This document shows, piece by piece, positions 42,854 to 49,310 of a stretch of 64,000 nt of DNA (the first letter of the stretch is position 1; each line of letters opens with the position of its first letter). The notes beneath the pieces were generated by a model. The model saw only the letters and a program-made list of their open reading frames with translations. It was not told the origin of the DNA and made no database searches. The stretch comes from Hyaloraphidium curvatum SAG 235-1 (taxonomy: Eukaryota > Fungi > Monoblepharomycota), in contig JAIVFI010000015.1 of assembly GCA_025558095.1 (NCBI GenBank), forward strand, positions 434,001 to 498,000, written 5' to 3'. The position numbers and the translations under genes are program-made.

Positions 42854-44068
42854 TCAATACTCGTCGCCCGAATCCGTCCGCGTGCTGTACGCGTCCGACG
42901 ACCCGCTTCCGCTCTGCCACGGGTCCCTGTACCCTCCCGCCGCATTCTCCTCGTCCCCTTCGTCCTCGTCCGGGTAGTCGTGGGTATAGTACTCCTCCGC
43001 TGCCGGATCTCAAATGAGGATCACGACCCGTGGGTGCGGGAGTCCACCCACCGTTCGAGTCCTCCTCGTCCACGGAATCGTCGTCCTCCTCCTCCGCGAT
43101 GAGCTTGTCCAGCTCGTCCTCGTCCATCATCACCAGCTCCCCCGCCGAGAGGTCCTGCCGCAAGCGGGTGAGGAACCCGGCCGGCTCGGGCGAGTCCGCC
43201 GCGCCGTCGCCTTCCGGGCCCTCTACCGCGTCATGCGCGGGCATGTCCCCGTCGGCGACCATGTACAGGTCGTAGACAAAGTCATCGTCCGGGTTGGCAA
43301 CCCGCGGCAACCAGGGCGCTGGCGATGCCGGGGTTGAAGCGGGTTCCGGGTCGGGTCCCAGGTCGCCGCCGGTCATCCTCAGGTACTCCCTGAGCATGGG
43401 CATCAGCGCCGCCATCCGCGCCTCGGCCTCGGCGTCGTCTGACGCTGCTGCTGTCCGGGCTTTAAGTGGGGGCGGCGCCCCCGGCCTGTTCCGTGTCCGC
43501 CTGGTCCGCCTCGAGGCCGATACTCGGATCGCCTCCTCCTCCGCGAGCGCTTCGTAGAGCTCGTAGTCCGCAGCCGACGCCGGGCCGTCCCCGGTGCCCT
43601 GCGATCGGTTGACCGACACGACGCGGAAGCGGGTCGAGCGCGAGCGCCGCTCGTAGCCCCGCACGCGCTCCTCGCGGGCCTCGGCGAACTTGCTGATGTT
43701 GCCGGGCACCCCGTCGTCCTCCGGGCCGGCGAAAAAGTCGGCGACGGCGGGCGTGCCGGCGGCGATGCGTGCGCGGATCAGTCGTTCGAGGTCGGCTGCC
43801 GCGTGGCGCGCGGGCAGCGCCGCGTGGGCGAGCGCAAACACGAGCGACGCGGGGGCGGCGGCGGGCGTGGCATTGGACGCGTTGGAGTCGTCCAGCGGCG
43901 CGTCGTCGGCGCCCTTTGTGCGCTTGCGATCGACGACTGCGGGACGCGTCAGGGCGGTCTCGCCAGTCGGAGGGGCGCAATCCCACTGAGCACGTCGAGC
44001 GGCTCGTCATCGCGCTTCCGCTTGACGCGCAGGAACGTCGCCGAGGCGGACGACGACGCGTTGGCCAT
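42854..44068 (-). CDS. IWR1: RNA polymerase II nuclear import factor Iwr1/SLC7A6OS, 3 exons
   Basis: FLRVKRKRDDEPLDVL, DDDFVYDLY, DEEDSN-AEEYYTHDYPDED. Confidence 0.88.
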
Positions 44069-44250
44069 CCCGCTCCTCTCTTGAGTTGTTTGTTTGGGCA
44101 GCCATCCATCACTCGCCACGGAGCCAACGTACAGACTGTCTCCCGCAAGGCACTTTGGCTCGACGGCGTACGTCGTCGCCAAGTGAACGTCTACTGAAGT
44201 GTCTCCCGCGGCCAATCTACTTTGGCTGGACGGCGTCCCGAGCAATCGCG

Positions 44251-46380
44251 ATGGACACGCACAAAGGCACGCGCGACGCCGCGCTCCGCATCCTGGGCGA
44301 GCTCGGCTTCGGCAGGTTCACGGGCGGCCCGACACCCGAGCAGACCCGGGAGCTCGTCGACTCGGCGACCCTCACGGGATCAACGGCGCCGTTCATGCCG
44401 TCGCCGTGGAAGTGCTCCGAGATCCATGCGGGGGGCCAGCTGGCGCTCGCCGTCGTGTGCGCGTGGCTGGAAGGTCTGCGCGGCCGGGAATGCAAGGTCG
44501 AGCTGGACGTAATCCACGCTGGGTGGGTCGCATGGGGCCAGCTCGCGATCGAGTGGGAGGTGGAAGGAGGCGGCATGTGGCTCGAGAACTCGGCGCTGTT
44601 CAACAAGAAGGCTGCCGAGCAGACGGCAAAGGGGGAGGCCGTGGACGCCGCTGCAACGACGCCTCCCACTACCCCCGGGGATGCCGCCGACCCTCCCCTC
44701 GCGGACCCGCCTGCGGACACCCTTCCCGGCTCGCCCATCTACGCCAACGCTCGTGCCCTCCTCTCGGACGTGTTCCTGACCCGCGACTCGCGCCACATCT
44801 TCTTCTTCGTCATGTCGTGGGATCCGCCGCAGAAGCTGCTCACCGCCATCGGCTGTCCCCCGGACGAGATCCGCCGCCTCGTACGCCTGTCGCTGGCGTC
44901 CGCCGACACGCACCCGAAAACCTGGGAAGCGTACCACAAGGAGTTTTCCGACACCGTCACCGCCCGCCTCAAGGAGAACGCCGCCTTCGACCTCGAGCGG
45001 CGCTCCCTCAACTCGGGCATCATCGCCATCGTCATGCGCACCCGGGAAGAGTTCTCGCGCGACCCGCACGGCATGGTGCTGGAGCAGCTCCCGCGGTACA
45101 TGTGCGAGCGCCACGCCGCCGTCCGCGGACCGCGCACGCTCGACGAGTGGGCCGCGTTCCGGTCCGGCAGGCTTGACGAGGACGCCCCGTCGGAGCTCTG
45201 GCCGGCCTCGGGGTGGCCCTCCTTCGCGCCGTCGCCCCGCCGCGGCACCCTGTACGGAGTCAAGGTGCTCGCCTTTACCCGCATCGTCGCCGGACCGATC
45301 GCGGGTTTGCAGCTCGCGCAGCTCGGCGCCGACGTGCTGCGCGTCTCGGCCCCGGGGTGGTTCGACTTTCCGCACCACGAGCTTGGGATCAACTTTGGCA
45401 TGCGCAGCACGACGCTGGACGTCAAGTCCCCCGCTGGTCGGGCACAGGTAATCAAGCTGGTCATGGAAGCCGACGTGATCCTGTGCAACCTCCTCCCCGG
45501 GACGCTCGACAAGATGGGCCTCGGGTTCCGGGACGTCCTCGGGATGGTCAAGAACAGGGGCAAGGGCATCGTCTACGTGGAATCATCCACCTTTGGCCCA
45601 CTCGGGCCCATGTCGCATTTCCAGGGGATGGAAACCATCGGACAGCTCTTTTCCGGGCTCGCGCACGAGCATACCAAGTTTCAGCCGTTCAAGGGCCCGC
45701 CCCAACCCACCGGACCGCCGCTGATGCTATGCGATGTCGGCACAGGAATAGGAATAGCCGCGGGCGCAATGGTCGGGCTCGCGAGGAGGGCGGTGCAGGG
45801 TGGCAGCTACCTCGTCCGCGGCTCGCTGGTGCAGACGGGCCTGATGGTCCAGGACCTTGGCAAGTACCCCGACGATGCGGCGGTGCGCAGGCTGTGGGAC
45901 GGGTACCCGCCGATCGAGGAGGTGCCGTGGCTCGTGGTCGAGATACCGCGGTACGCGAGGGAGATTGGGGCGCCGGGGTCGCGGTGGGAGAGCGGGAACT
46001 GGATGCGGACGGTGGACAATCCCCATGGTGAGTTGCGCTATGCGACGCCACGTGGACGTGCTGACGGCTCCGGCCTTTGCCTTGCGCCTCCAGGCGGCTC
46101 TGTCGTCCACCTGATCCCGCCGATTAAGCTCTCCGTGCACTCGGGCATCAACCACATCCGCTTCGTCTCGCGGCCGCTGCACTACGACGCCCACGCCGGG
46201 TTCCTCTTCGACCACAGTGACGGAGAGGGCGTCGGCGAGGAGGTGTTTGATCTGGTCGCAGTGGAGGGGGCCGAGCGGACGTGGAGGTGCCTCGGAAGGG
46301 AGGAGGTGGAGGCGAAGATCGCGAGGCGGGCGAGGGAGCGCGAAATGGGGGAGGGGAGGACCCAACGTTCGAGTTTGTAG
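44251..46380 (+). CDS. family III CoA-transferase (CaiB/BaiF), single exon
   Basis: LYGVKVLAFTRIVAGP...LAQLGADVLRV, GMRSTTLD, ADVILCNLLPGTLDKMGLG, FGPLGP and PLMLCDVGTG (catalytic Asp position). Confidence 0.9.
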   Translation: MDTHKGTRDAALRILGELGFGRFTGGPTPEQTRELVDSATLTGSTAPFMPSPWKCSEIHAGGQLALAVVCAWLEGLRGRECKVELDVIHAGWVAWGQLAIEWEVEGGGMWLENSALFNKKAAEQTAKGEAVDAAATTPPTTPGDAADPPLADPPADTLPGSPIYANARALLSDVFLTRDSRHIFFFVMSWDPPQKLLTAIGCPPDEIRRLVRLSLASADTHPKTWEAYHKEFSDTVTARLKENAAFDLERRSLNSGIIAIVMRTREEFSRDPHGMVLEQLPRYMCERHAAVRGPRTLDEWAAFRSGRLDEDAPSELWPASGWPSFAPSPRRGTLYGVKVLAFTRIVAGPIAGLQLAQLGADVLRVSAPGWFDFPHHELGINFGMRSTTLDVKSPAGRAQVIKLVMEADVILCNLLPGTLDKMGLGFRDVLGMVKNRGKGIVYVESSTFGPLGPMSHFQGMETIGQLFSGLAHEHTKFQPFKGPPQPTGPPLMLCDVGTGIGIAAGAMVGLARRAVQGGSYLVRGSLVQTGLMVQDLGKYPDDAAVRRLWDGYPPIEEVPWLVVEIPRYAREIGAPGSRWESGNWMRTVDNPHGELRYATPRGRADGSGLCLAPPGGSVVHLIPPIKLSVHSGINHIRFVSRPLHYDAHAGFLFDHSDGEGVGEEVFDLVAVEGAERTWRCLGREEVEAKIARRAREREMGEGRTQRSSL

Positions 46381-46537
46381 GATGCGGTTCGAGCTTTCCC
46401 TCCATTTGGGGTCCTCAATTCATTTCAACGAAAGCACATTCCCGTCCACGCATCCGATCAATACAGGGCTTCAACCCGCCCGGATGCGCATCGACCTTGC
46501 CGTAAGAATGCTCGCTAACCCGTGCGCATTGCACAAG

Positions 46538-48270
46538 CTAGTCGAGGTCGTCCCAATTCTCCTCGTCAGGAGACGTCTCCACCCTTCGCTTGTTCCTCGC
46601 CGACGCGTCGGGCTTGCGGTCGAACGGCTCCACCGTCTTGCCCAAGAGCGTGGCAAAGGTGCCGAGGGCCTGCGCTAACTTGGCCTTAACATGCGGGTCC
46701 TCTGCTGAGGCGCGGCCGTCTTGGTCTGTCGAGGAGGCGCCGACCGTGTCACTTGCTGCTCCCAACTTTAGTGCGGCAGCGCCTTCGGCTATGCACTTGA
46801 GGCAATCTGCAGGGTCGTGCACCCAGTCAAAAGTCCGATGGAGATGCTGAAGAAGGCGCAAGCCTCACAGTCAATTTTCAGTGCAAGAAGCGTCCACGCC
46901 TTCTTTCCGCACTTCTTGCAAATGAAATAGGACCTCAAGTTGCTCGGGATCATGTTTCCGATCTCCTCCATCTGCTCCACGCTGTACATGGAGCCCGGTG
47001 CCGACAGCACAGCTTCCGCCGCGAAATCCGTGATGTCGACGGGCTTCTCGCGCGTGATGAGTCCGCCACTGGTCAGGAGGAGGCCCTCAAAGGTCGTTTC
47101 GATCGCCTTGCCGACAGGCGTGTCGACCACGCCGCATGGATCTTCCAGCACCATTGTGGTCAGCCTCTTGAGGACTTCTGCTTCCCGCTGAATGATCTGT
47201 TCCGATGTAGGCTGGGGAAGCGAGACCACGTTCCTCGCCTCGCAATACTCCGGCGTCGAGGAAACGTACGACGACGACGCAGGAAACATTGGAGTAGACC
47301 CCTGGCTTCCGGGTTCGGCCCAGGCGTCGAGGTCATCCGTGGGTCGGCCACCGGATCCAAAGCCGCCGAAAGCGGTGGAAACTGCCTGATCGGGAACGAC
47401 CACGTCGTTCTCGTCGCCTGCGGAATGATGCAGCAAAGGCTCCTCTGTCTGCTTGCCCTTCACGGAGCGTTGAGGCTTCGCCCGCTTCTTGCCCGGTTTG
47501 CCGACCTGCTGCCCGCTCTTGTCCATGGCAGGCGGCGGCACCTGTTGGAGACTCCCCTGCTCCTTGTGGAAATCCGTGATGTGCCCCAGGTACGTTTTGT
47601 TCGTCACCAGGTGATCCTTCAGTTCAAACTCAACGTTTTCGTCGCACTCCAAGCAGGCCCATCGCTGCACTCCTTCTTCATCGCGGAAGCCAACGATCCG
47701 AGGATCTTTATTGTAGTGCAGATGGTCCGTGGGGATGGTTACCCGGATCGGAGACGCAGCGACGACGCGCCTGAGCTCCTCCAAATTTGATCGCTCCCAG
47801 TCCTTTCGCGCAGAGGTTTGCAGCCCCTTCAGGCTCTTAAACGAGTCCTTCCCCTTGCCTTTGATGAACTTTGTGGGTGCTTCCACGCACGTGCATCCCA
47901 GCAGCGGTACCCAAGGCCGCGAGGCCTCGGTTACCGGTTCCGGGGCGCCGGAGGAGGAGCTGGAGCCCGCGTTTTTGCCGGGGCCGGCCGCATCGGGATC
48001 GGGATAGTCCTGCCGTTGCATGCCGAGAAACACGTCACCGGAGGATGGGTGGACCAGTACCGCAAAGGCCGGCACGTCGTCGGGGGATTTCCCGCGCTTC
48101 CTAAGCTCTTCACGCATGAATGCCTCCGTATCAAACGGCTCGTCGGCTCCGGGTTCCTCGTAGGAATAGCCGGCGTCGTCTCCACAGTCGATCCGGTCTG
48201 GGTCCTCGCGGCCGTCCTCGTCCGCTGAAGCATCGTCCGAACCAAAATCCCCTGCAAAGTATTGGGACAT
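46538..48270 (-). CDS. orphan protein with two putative zinc fingers; exons 48270-46900 and 46846-46538
   Basis: Long open frame from MSQYFAGDFG. Contains WACLEC...HITDFH (C2H2/BED-like). A predicted 53-nt GC-AG intron gives CKKC-x17-CLKC. Confidence 0.65.
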
Positions 48271-48534
48271 CCCTCGGTGAGCCCGTAGGAAGCGGTGGCG
48301 GCTTGGCGTTCGAGTTGAGCGGAACGATGGGCGGGCGGCCGGTGGGCGGCTGCCGGCCGGTGCCAGCAGCGAGCACCTCCAAAGCGTCTCCGAGTCTGGC
48401 CCGCAGGCGGCCCCAGCCGACCCTCCAAAATCCCTCGGACGCCTTTCCATTATGAAGACCTGCGAGATCGTCGGGATTCCGGGGCCCTTTCGCGCGATGG
48501 AGCTGTGGACCACCCCGGACCACCCCAGCGGGGA

Positions 48535-48542
48535 TATATAAG
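48535..48542 (+). promoter_or_regulatory. TATA box candidate
   Basis: TATATAAG in GC-rich context, about 150 nt upstream of the 48689 microprotein ATG. Confidence 0.55.
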
Positions 48543-48688
48543 CTCGGGCCCCGCCGGTACCCTCCCACACTTCCAGCACCAGCATCTTTGCCTCGGCATC
48601 TCTGCACTCTCTTCCGCCACTCGTAAGCCACGCCGCCACGCCCGGCTCGGTCTGCACCACTGATCTGGTTCCCAGACTCCTCATCAAG

Positions 48689-48868
48689 ATGGGCAACGTC
48701 GTCTCTGGCGTCGTCGACGTGACCGAAGTCGTCAGCAAGATCGTGCCCCTCCCTTGCACGGCTTGCGGCCACCCCACCACCCAGCACACCCGCGTGGGGA
48801 ACGACGGTCCCCACCGCGTCTACCGCTGCTCGTGCGGGTCGCACTGCAAGCTGCTCGTGCCCACTTGA
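48689..48868 (+). CDS. 59-aa putative N-myristoylated Cys/His-rich (zinc-binding) microprotein
   Basis: MGNVVSGVVDVTEVVSKIVPLPCTACGHPTTQHTRVGNDGPHRVYRCSCGSHCKLLVPT*. It has a G2/S6 myristoylation consensus, strongly C/G-ending codons, CAAGATGG start context and an upstream TATA. It is just shorter than the smallest ORFs in the track. Confidence 0.65.
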   Translation: MGNVVSGVVDVTEVVSKIVPLPCTACGHPTTQHTRVGNDGPHRVYRCSCGSHCKLLVPT

Positions 48869-49310
48869 GGCGAGTTCGCCGGCCGCGTTCCGCATGCTCG
48901 AAGCTGACACCGTTGCGCCTCCCCAGCAGCGCGAGGAAGCGTCGAGGACGGGATCTCGCTCGGGGTTGCAGCAGTTTGGGTTGGGGGTGGGTGTGACGGC
49001 CGGACGAGGGGGGGACTTGGCCGCACGCTAGGGCATTCTTTCTGTACTGGCGACGATCGGTAACACAAGCCCGTCCCGAACCTGCCCGCGCTGTGCCAGA
49101 TCGCATGCCGCCTACATCCGGGATCCGCCCTTGCACCGGGACCTTCACTCGCATGACCCGTCCCGTCCGCTCACCGTACGAAAAGCTTGCGGGGTTGCGA
49201 GACCGTGTAGTGAGCGGTCGACCCGCGGACCGCGCCCCAAGACAAAGAGCCAGCGATCGGGCCCGCCACTCCCTTCCCCCGATCGGCACTTCAGCCGGCG
49301 CCGATCCTGC

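Follow-up and report, generated by a model that had tools for sequence, protein, structure and literature searches.

Evidence for a Small Spliced Gene of Hyaloraphidium curvatum Encoding a Cys/His Microprotein with a Probable Zinc-Ribbon-Like Domain

INTRODUCTION

Several classes of small metal-binding domains are defined by the number and spacing of their Cys and His residues. Zinc ribbons hold one zinc with four ligands contributed by two Cys knuckles, typically C-x2-C each. The CSL/DPH3-type zinc finger is a small single-zinc domain with the arrangement C-x-C ... C-x2-C. C2H2 fingers follow the spacing C-x2-4-C-x12-H-x3-5-H, and metallothioneins are composed of roughly 20 to 30% Cys, with His and aromatic residues scarce or absent. 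A signature of another kind, an N terminus of the form MGN..S, is found in N-myristoylated proteins such as calcineurin B and recoverin. Among the positions that follow the acceptor Gly, Ser at position 6 is favoured by fungal N-myristoyltransferases (NMTs).

Here we describe a locus in the monoblepharid, chytrid-like fungus Hyaloraphidium curvatum whose predicted 59-residue product carries both an N-terminal signature of the latter kind and a compact set of Cys and His residues that recalls zinc ribbons. The locus lies on contig C15 (positions 434001-498000) of a 31.9-Mb, 55-contig, GC-rich genome; this 64-kb stretch is referred to below as the window, and coordinates are those of the window unless a contig is named. 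An original prediction, made from the sequence of the window alone, had described the locus as an unannotated, single-exon gene for an inducible, membrane-tethered zinc-ribbon microprotein of no known family. We combined public RNA contigs, protein and nucleotide homology searches, and structure prediction to examine this proposal.

RESULTS

The ORF is contained in the middle exon of a spliced transcript. The open reading frame (ORF) at 48689-48868 on the + strand begins with ATG, comprises 59 codons plus TGA, and encodes a protein with the N terminus MGNVVS. The protein contains five Cys and four His residues, arranged as C23-x2-C26-G-H28, H33, H42, C47-x-C49, H52, and C53. When contigs of X1, the one public run that covered this stretch, were compared with the ~5 kb of genome around the ORF, six short segments (52-65 nt) were missing from the contigs, all of them with GT..AG, GC..AG, or complementary CT..AC ends. 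The absence of these intron-like segments indicates that run X1 is derived from RNA. Two of the six joints correspond to + strand introns on either side of the ORF (48623-48675 and 48870-48926), and the locus is therefore a three-exon gene with its entire coding sequence (CDS) in exon 2. The features of the gene are as follows.

48535-48542, + strand: TATA box TATATAAG, read in the sequence; putative promoter element
48543-48622, + strand: leader and exon 1 (5' UTR), CT-rich; covered by the RNA contig up to the splice donor at 48622
48623-48675, + strand: intron 1 in the 5' UTR, 53 nt, GTAAGC...CAG, with a CTGAT branch-point-like motif; joint 48622->48676 with GT..AG ends
48676-48869, + strand: exon 2, with the whole CDS inside; contig piece 48676-48867(+2)
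48689-48868, + strand: CDS of 59 aa plus TGA, start context ATCAAGATGG; from the ORF reading and the homologue P0002
48689-48709, + strand: MGNVVSG, fitting the NMT consensus G-{EDRKHPFYW}-x2-[STAGCN]-{P}; from the sequence, not conserved in P0002
48746-48865, + strand: Cys/His mini-domain, residues 20-59, predicted three-stranded sheet; from invariant columns in alignment A1 and AlphaFold2
48870-48926, + strand: intron 2, 57 nt, GC-AG, GCGAGT...CAG, with a CTGAC branch-point-like motif; joint 48867->48925
48927-49237, + strand: exon 3 (3' UTR); contig piece 48925-49237 and depth bins

The two introns closely bracket the CDS. Intron 1 ends 13 nt 5' of the ATG, and intron 2 starts 1 nt past the stop codon, such that the 3' UTR is spliced. 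The joint 48867->48925 includes two ambiguous bases, and GC..AG ends appear in the +2 register only; the mRNA sequence is identical in every register of this joint, and the stop codon is therefore unmoved. Intron 2 is of the GC-AG type, and the other five introns in the 5-kb stretch are GT-AG introns of 52-65 nt. The X1 contig ends at 49237 and is followed by an uncovered gap to about 49350, where a convergent transcript of the neighbouring PTPA gene starts. One contig accounts for the depth bins in full, which leaves no assembled contig that retains an intron. The transcript evidence consists of assembled contigs, which demonstrate transcription and splicing and are silent on the 5' end, the strand of unspliced parts, the expression level, and translation. 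Thus, the description of the gene as single exon holds for the CDS, which lies within one exon, but not for the gene, which has introns in its 5' UTR and directly past its stop codon.

The start codon is well placed for translation. The ATG at 48689 is the first after the TATA box and has a strong Kozak context (ATCAAGATGG). No other ATG was found between the TATA box and the start codon when 48543-48622 and 48676-48688 were scanned, and the spliced leader contains no in-frame ATG further upstream.

The TATA box that had been noted about 150 nt upstream of the ORF was located 154 nt from the ATG in the genome, a distance of 101 nt in the spliced mRNA. It is one of only two matches to TATAWAWR in the 64-kb window, compared to 0.22 expected from shuffles. 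In a TATA-dependent promoter, TATAWAWR lies about 30-120 nt 5' of the transcription start; here, the RNA contig extends across the intergenic region at the TATA box into the divergent neighbour. The proposal that the gene is inducible takes this box as its one source, and any regulatory role of the element would be putative.

Transcripts of neighbouring genes overlap or abut at the locus. Upstream of the microprotein gene, in head-to-head orientation on the - strand, is an orphan gene for a Cys-rich protein of 556 aa (ATG at 48270, intron at 46807-46868, stop at 46538). Its GC content at third codon positions (GC3) is 0.73, and its product has an acidic N terminus and two Cys clusters. No Pfam family matched the 556-aa protein above threshold, and no similarity to the microprotein was detected. 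The start codons of these two divergent genes are 419 bp apart. Downstream, the convergent neighbour on the - strand encodes PTPA, a phosphotyrosyl phosphatase activator (Pfam E value of 6e-55).

Further upstream, an intronless gene for a CoA-transferase III occupies 44251-46377 on the + strand and encodes 709 aa from its first ATG. The matching H. curvatum protein at NCBI is 97% identical and 687 aa long, so the annotated model of this gene differs from the ORF. A paralogue of the CoA-transferase, P0005 (46% identity), is encoded on another contig. Within 44000-49237, a single RNA contig of 4870 nt spans the CoA-transferase gene (+), the 556-aa gene (-), and the microprotein gene (+), each with the introns of its own strand removed. 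A contig that runs through genes on both strands does not represent one RNA; it shows that transcripts overlap or abut in the divergent promoter region of 419 bp.

Base composition favours a coding function for an ORF absent from protein collections. G or C ends 53 of the 59 codons of the ORF, and the GC contents at codon positions 1, 2, and 3 are 0.63, 0.51, and 0.90, respectively. The length of the ORF carries little weight: at 63% GC, stop codons are so infrequent that the window contains 273 ATG ORFs of 59 aa or longer, and an ORF of this length is on its own not beyond chance in 64 kb. Among these 273 ORFs, the microprotein ORF ranks in the top 9% for GC3. We also scored codon usage with a log-likelihood model trained on seven long, high-GC3 ORFs from the window. 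By this measure, none of the other five frames scored higher, and the ORF fell within the top 10% of small ORFs; among true coding windows, however, it reached just the 9th percentile. Composition therefore favours the ORF without settling its coding status.

The exact 59-aa sequence was not found in a collection of 15 billion proteins, and neither word-index nor HMMER searches returned an H. curvatum protein containing it. The annotated protein of the neighbouring CoA-transferase gene is present in the same collection, which is consistent with the claim that the microprotein gene is unannotated. The position of the ORF, its MGNVVS start, its Cys/His content, and its bias toward codons ending in C or G were likewise confirmed as originally described.

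A homologue from an AT-rich eukaryote shares the Cys/His core. A full HMMER search of 1.84 billion representative proteins returned three matches, one of which, P0002 (72 aa; E value of 1.3e-7), is the sole true homologue. We rejected the remaining two, P0001 (2414 aa) and P0003 (2045 aa), since both are long proteins made of repeats and their scores add up many weak repeat matches that are free of Cys. P0002 aligns with the microprotein without gaps, with 23 of 51 residues identical (45%), coincident C-terminal ends, and a score with a z value of 22 above shuffles. Both proteins contain C-x2-C-G-H-x4-H-x13-C-x-C-G-x2-C, and the residues that are invariant in the pair are C23, C26, G27, H28, H33, T34, R43, V44, Y45, C47, C49, G50, C53, and P58. 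The Cys/His pattern that had drawn attention to the ORF is thus retained in P0002 at C23, C26, H28, H33, C47, C49, and C53 but not at H42 and H52, which are unlikely to be ligands.

This alignment demonstrates that the reading frame and the protein are conserved. Over the 51 aligned codons, identity between the two genes is 0.51 and 0.61 at codon positions 1 and 2 and 0.20 at position 3. This profile points to selection on the protein rather than on the DNA and is, as judged by sequence comparison, the strongest argument that the ORF is translated.

P0002 is encoded on a 1070-bp metagenome contig of 36% GC. The small ORF (L002 138-356) is followed 41 nt downstream, on the same strand, by a gene for succinyl-CoA ligase alpha (L002 398-1069; Pfam E value of 2e-29). 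The ligase scores 336 bits against the human and pig mitochondrial enzymes and 296 bits against that of Escherichia coli, and it is 69% identical to the H. curvatum copy. The low GC content together with the mitochondrial-type ligase indicates that the source of P0002 is another eukaryote, one with an AT-rich and apparently compact genome. The 41-nt spacing itself points either to extreme compactness of that genome or to an arrangement in which the small ORF is an upstream ORF or part of a bicistronic unit. A further sequence, L003, is the P0002 contig re-assembled and not a second homologue; conservation therefore rests on a single pair of proteins, with the homologue drawn from one sample.

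Additional searches did not enlarge the family. A word-index protein search with the microprotein alone returned nothing, and one with the pair returned P0002 only. Scanning metagenomes with back-translated peptides yielded no confirmed locus. The full Cys/His motif, written as a degenerate DNA pattern and applied to metagenome, viral, and prokaryotic genome collections, matched the P0002 contig and five other sites, all with in-frame stops, which we dismissed as chance matches. Because the DNA-level scans were of metagenome, viral, and prokaryotic collections, little can be concluded from how rare the family appears to be.

Within the H. curvatum genome, no paralogue was detected at E values up to 10. 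The motif CxxCGH-x4-H occurs at nine sites, only one of which, on contig C5, reads CTACGH....H, and the second-half Cys motif was found nowhere in the genome other than at the microprotein locus. The C5 site falls in an ORF of 211 aa (L012 387-1022, - strand, within G000:C5:607400-608900), which we rejected as a paralogue, as it has nothing in common with the microprotein beyond the 11 residues CTACGH....H. This 211-aa ORF matches no Pfam family and has a Q/S/P-rich N terminus; it contains C-F-C, then 17 residues, then CTACGH-x4-H, that is, elements of the microprotein in permuted order. A separate region on contig C4 (L018; G000:C4:287900-289600) contains, at about 659 and 980, two near-identical Cys-rich units, CTECPECDNFL-GRVINICDWCGHNASVH, 321 bp apart. 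Each follows a Pro/Gly/Tyr-rich stretch, and the arrangement looks like a tandemly repeated zinc-ribbon-like motif.

The conserved region weakly resembles zinc ribbons but has an atypical second half-site. As originally proposed, the microprotein could be assigned to no family in the curated collections searched (Pfam, NCBIfam, PHROGs, and PDB). Its best Pfam match was Zn_ribbon_TFIIS (PF01096), at 13.5 bits versus a cutoff of 21 (E value of 0.065); the best match of P0002 was Zn_ribbon_4 (PF13717), at 16.2 bits versus a cutoff of 30.3 (E value of 0.011). NCBIfam and PHROGs gave no match to the microprotein. A PDB profile search with the pair gave weak C2H2 matches through K-C-x2-C-G-x-x-F...H-T-H (E values of 0.037-0.2), and we discarded PDB matches to two TALE proteins, dHax3 and Hax3, as spurious repeat matches. 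Feature matches in the ESM Atlas were limited to small clusters without a name and zinc-ribbon look-alikes that fell short of the reliable range.

The AlphaFold2 model of the single sequence had a mean pLDDT of 65; when the alignment of both sequences was supplied, residues 20-59 reached a pLDDT of 73-85, and residues 1-18 remained below 50. The predicted strands span residues 33-39, 42-47, and 54-58. Fold searches with this model gave no significant match (Z scores of at most 2.7; Foldseek E values of about 1 or worse). The best structural neighbour was the N terminus of NrdR (Z score of 2.7; root mean square deviation of 2.4 A over 36 residues), with L37Ae, TFS4, and the Sec23 zinc finger as further weak neighbours. 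Foldseek matches at E values of about 1 were to eIF2-beta, ELOF1, and Rpb9-like chains, and the ESM Atlas gave the InsA and IS1595 ribbons at TM scores of 0.52-0.55.

The proposed zinc ribbon is thus no more than suggested: the best structural matches, though weak, are consistently small zinc ribbons, but the Pfam scores are below threshold, the fold matches do not exceed a Z score of 2.7, and only one half-site has the canonical form: C23-x2-C26 is conserved, and the second cluster, C47-x-C49-x3-C53, is conserved but atypical. We infer a zinc-ribbon-like domain in which the second half-site is atypical and the first knuckle is followed by an invariant G-H-x4-H, and, judging from the ligand pattern and the predicted fold, it is likely that the product binds zinc through this domain. 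By sequence comparison, the microprotein and P0002 appear to form a two-member orphan family within the small zinc-ribbon-like proteins, outside any described family.

The N terminus fits the NMT consensus in H. curvatum but not in the homologue. The microprotein has the Gly at position 2 that NMT requires, directly after M1 and with no upstream in-frame ATG in the spliced leader, and N3, S6, and G7 agree with the pattern positions of PROSITE PS00008. The genome encodes an NMT (PF01233, 202 bits; G000:C4:353527-353973), and the tail that would carry the lipid (residues 1-18) is modelled as disordered. The MGxxxS motif noted at the outset therefore stands as an NMT consensus in an organism with the enzyme; on the other side, G2 and S6 are absent from the sole homologue, which for these two residues, and in this one relative, is an outcome that the original prediction had named as counting against it. 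P0002 begins MKLVEK, has K and K aligned to G2 and S6, and has an internal Met followed by Ala. Its start codon is the gene caller's choice, and motif conservation is judged here on this one protein, so the lack of the motif lowers the case for lipidation without killing it. Because the sole homologue lacks the NMT motif, we regard membrane tethering of the H. curvatum protein by an N-myristoyl anchor as possible but somewhat doubtful.

DISCUSSION

The evidence presented here makes it very likely that the locus is a real, expressed, and previously unannotated gene of H. curvatum. In support of the original proposal of a genuine small protein-coding gene, we found a spliced + strand transcript, a CDS that begins at the first AUG, and a homologue with the same C terminus. 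The nature of the product is less firmly established, and the reading that we favour as a whole, with reasonable though not high confidence, is that this three-exon gene produces a protein consisting of a tail and a zinc-stabilized Cys/His mini-domain that functions as a binding module and is possibly lipidated. In this model, the 59-aa product would comprise a flexible N-terminal tail of about 18 residues and a conserved Cys/His mini-domain of about 40. The mini-domain would fold around one zinc held by the C23-x2-C26 knuckle and two of C47, C49, and C53, with the latter ligands placed in the loop between the last two strands. H28 and H33, not needed for this site, would be available to bind a second metal or to contact a partner. 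Such a protein would most likely act not as an enzyme but as a small binding module stabilized by zinc, serving a protein or nucleic acid as an adaptor or regulator. In this lineage, the H. curvatum protein might additionally be lipidated and associated with membranes.

We considered whether the ORF is instead open by chance, lies in a spliced transcript that is non-coding or UTR-like, and yields no functional protein. The abundance of ORFs of this size in the window, the modest codon score, the absence of the exact protein from databases, and the sequence-based nature of the evidence for translation are all compatible with this explanation. However, a chance frame would not be expected to have a homologue, similar at an E value of 1.3e-7 and a z value of 22 and ending at the same residue, in a genome of opposite base composition, nor to diverge from it chiefly at third codon positions (identity of 0.20, versus 0.51 and 0.61 at positions 1 and 2), and the frame opens at the first AUG in a strong context. 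We therefore consider this explanation very improbable. If the protein is real, its Cys and His residues might nevertheless serve in something other than a structural zinc site, such as binding of copper or iron, disulfide bonding, or a redox-active CxxC center. The seven conserved potential ligands exceed the need of one tetrahedral site, the second half-site is C-x-C-x3-C rather than the canonical C-x2-C, and no zinc-ribbon model scores above threshold. Yet the protein lacks a signal peptide or targeting sequence and is for that reason presumed to be cytosolic and reduced, a state that speaks against disulfides; furthermore, zinc knuckles classically take the form of C-x2-C-G leading into a beta hairpin, and the best fold neighbours are zinc domains without exception. 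A non-zinc function accordingly seems improbable to us, if less so than a chance ORF.

Harder to set aside is a zinc-binding microprotein that is not lipidated and acts as a soluble cytosolic or nuclear zinc-ribbon-like module, for example, a small subunit or a factor that binds nucleic acid or protein. MGNVVS would then be a coincidence of the G-rich +4 Kozak context. P0002 lacks G2 and S6, the conserved core begins only at residue 8 of the microprotein, the structural neighbours are zinc ribbons associated with nucleic acid or polymerase, and, by our estimate, a few percent of N termini fit the PROSITE pattern by chance. Weighing against coincidence are the agreement of the N terminus with the NMT consensus on all four counts, S6 included, the predicted disorder and accessibility of the tail, and the presence of an NMT gene in the genome; in addition, the start assigned to P0002 by the gene caller may be wrong. 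We view the soluble, unlipidated form as a serious contender, though one that falls somewhat short of being probable. A broader interpretation is that the pair represents a new family of eukaryotic Cys/His microproteins whose ligand arrangement is also new and whose members are scattered patchily among very distant eukaryotes, and that the H. curvatum member gained an N-myristoyl anchor and a TATA promoter and so became a regulated zinc module tethered to the membrane. This interpretation appears rather unlikely to hold in full.

The favoured reading, an expressed gene for a small zinc-stabilized module, has consequences for annotation as well as for protein classification. Annotation of early-diverging fungi routinely misses small genes of this kind, and the present locus is an unusually clean case, with a CDS bracketed by UTR introns and a homologue of opposite base composition. 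The gene models of H. curvatum and its relatives merit re-examination for short single-exon CDSs located between UTR introns. With this pair, the small zinc-ribbon-like proteins also gain a Cys/His mini-domain family that is as yet unclassified. Should the lipid anchor prove real, the H. curvatum protein would be a compact membrane-tethered zinc module in which an NMT motif was gained within a family.

Comparison with described systems places the microprotein nearest to the zinc ribbons. Of its 59 residues, 5 are Cys (8.5%), 4 are His, and 1 is Tyr, a composition unlike that of a metallothionein. Its His residues at +2 and +7 from C26 do not follow the C2H2 spacing, and it lacks a predicted helix bearing two His. 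Like calcineurin B and recoverin, it has M-G-N-x-x-S followed by a residue other than Pro and a flexible N terminus; beyond the motif, it has no sequence or fold kinship with these proteins, and its lipidation is a prediction from a motif not present in P0002. It shares with the CSL/DPH3-type finger a C-x-C-G pair and a C-x2-C pair, but the pairs occur in the opposite order, and there is no Pfam match to that family. Relative to the zinc ribbons of clan Zn_Beta_Ribbon, the microprotein differs in its second half-site (C-x-C-x3-C instead of C-x2-C) and scores below every gathering threshold; these families have nothing equivalent to its invariant G-H-x4-H, to the R-V-Y preceding the second cluster, or to the N-terminal NMT motif. 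It is nevertheless like zinc ribbons in the size of its domain, about 35-40 residues, in a C-x2-C-G knuckle that leads into a predicted beta hairpin, in a further Cys cluster at the turn after that, and in its predicted three-stranded antiparallel sheet.
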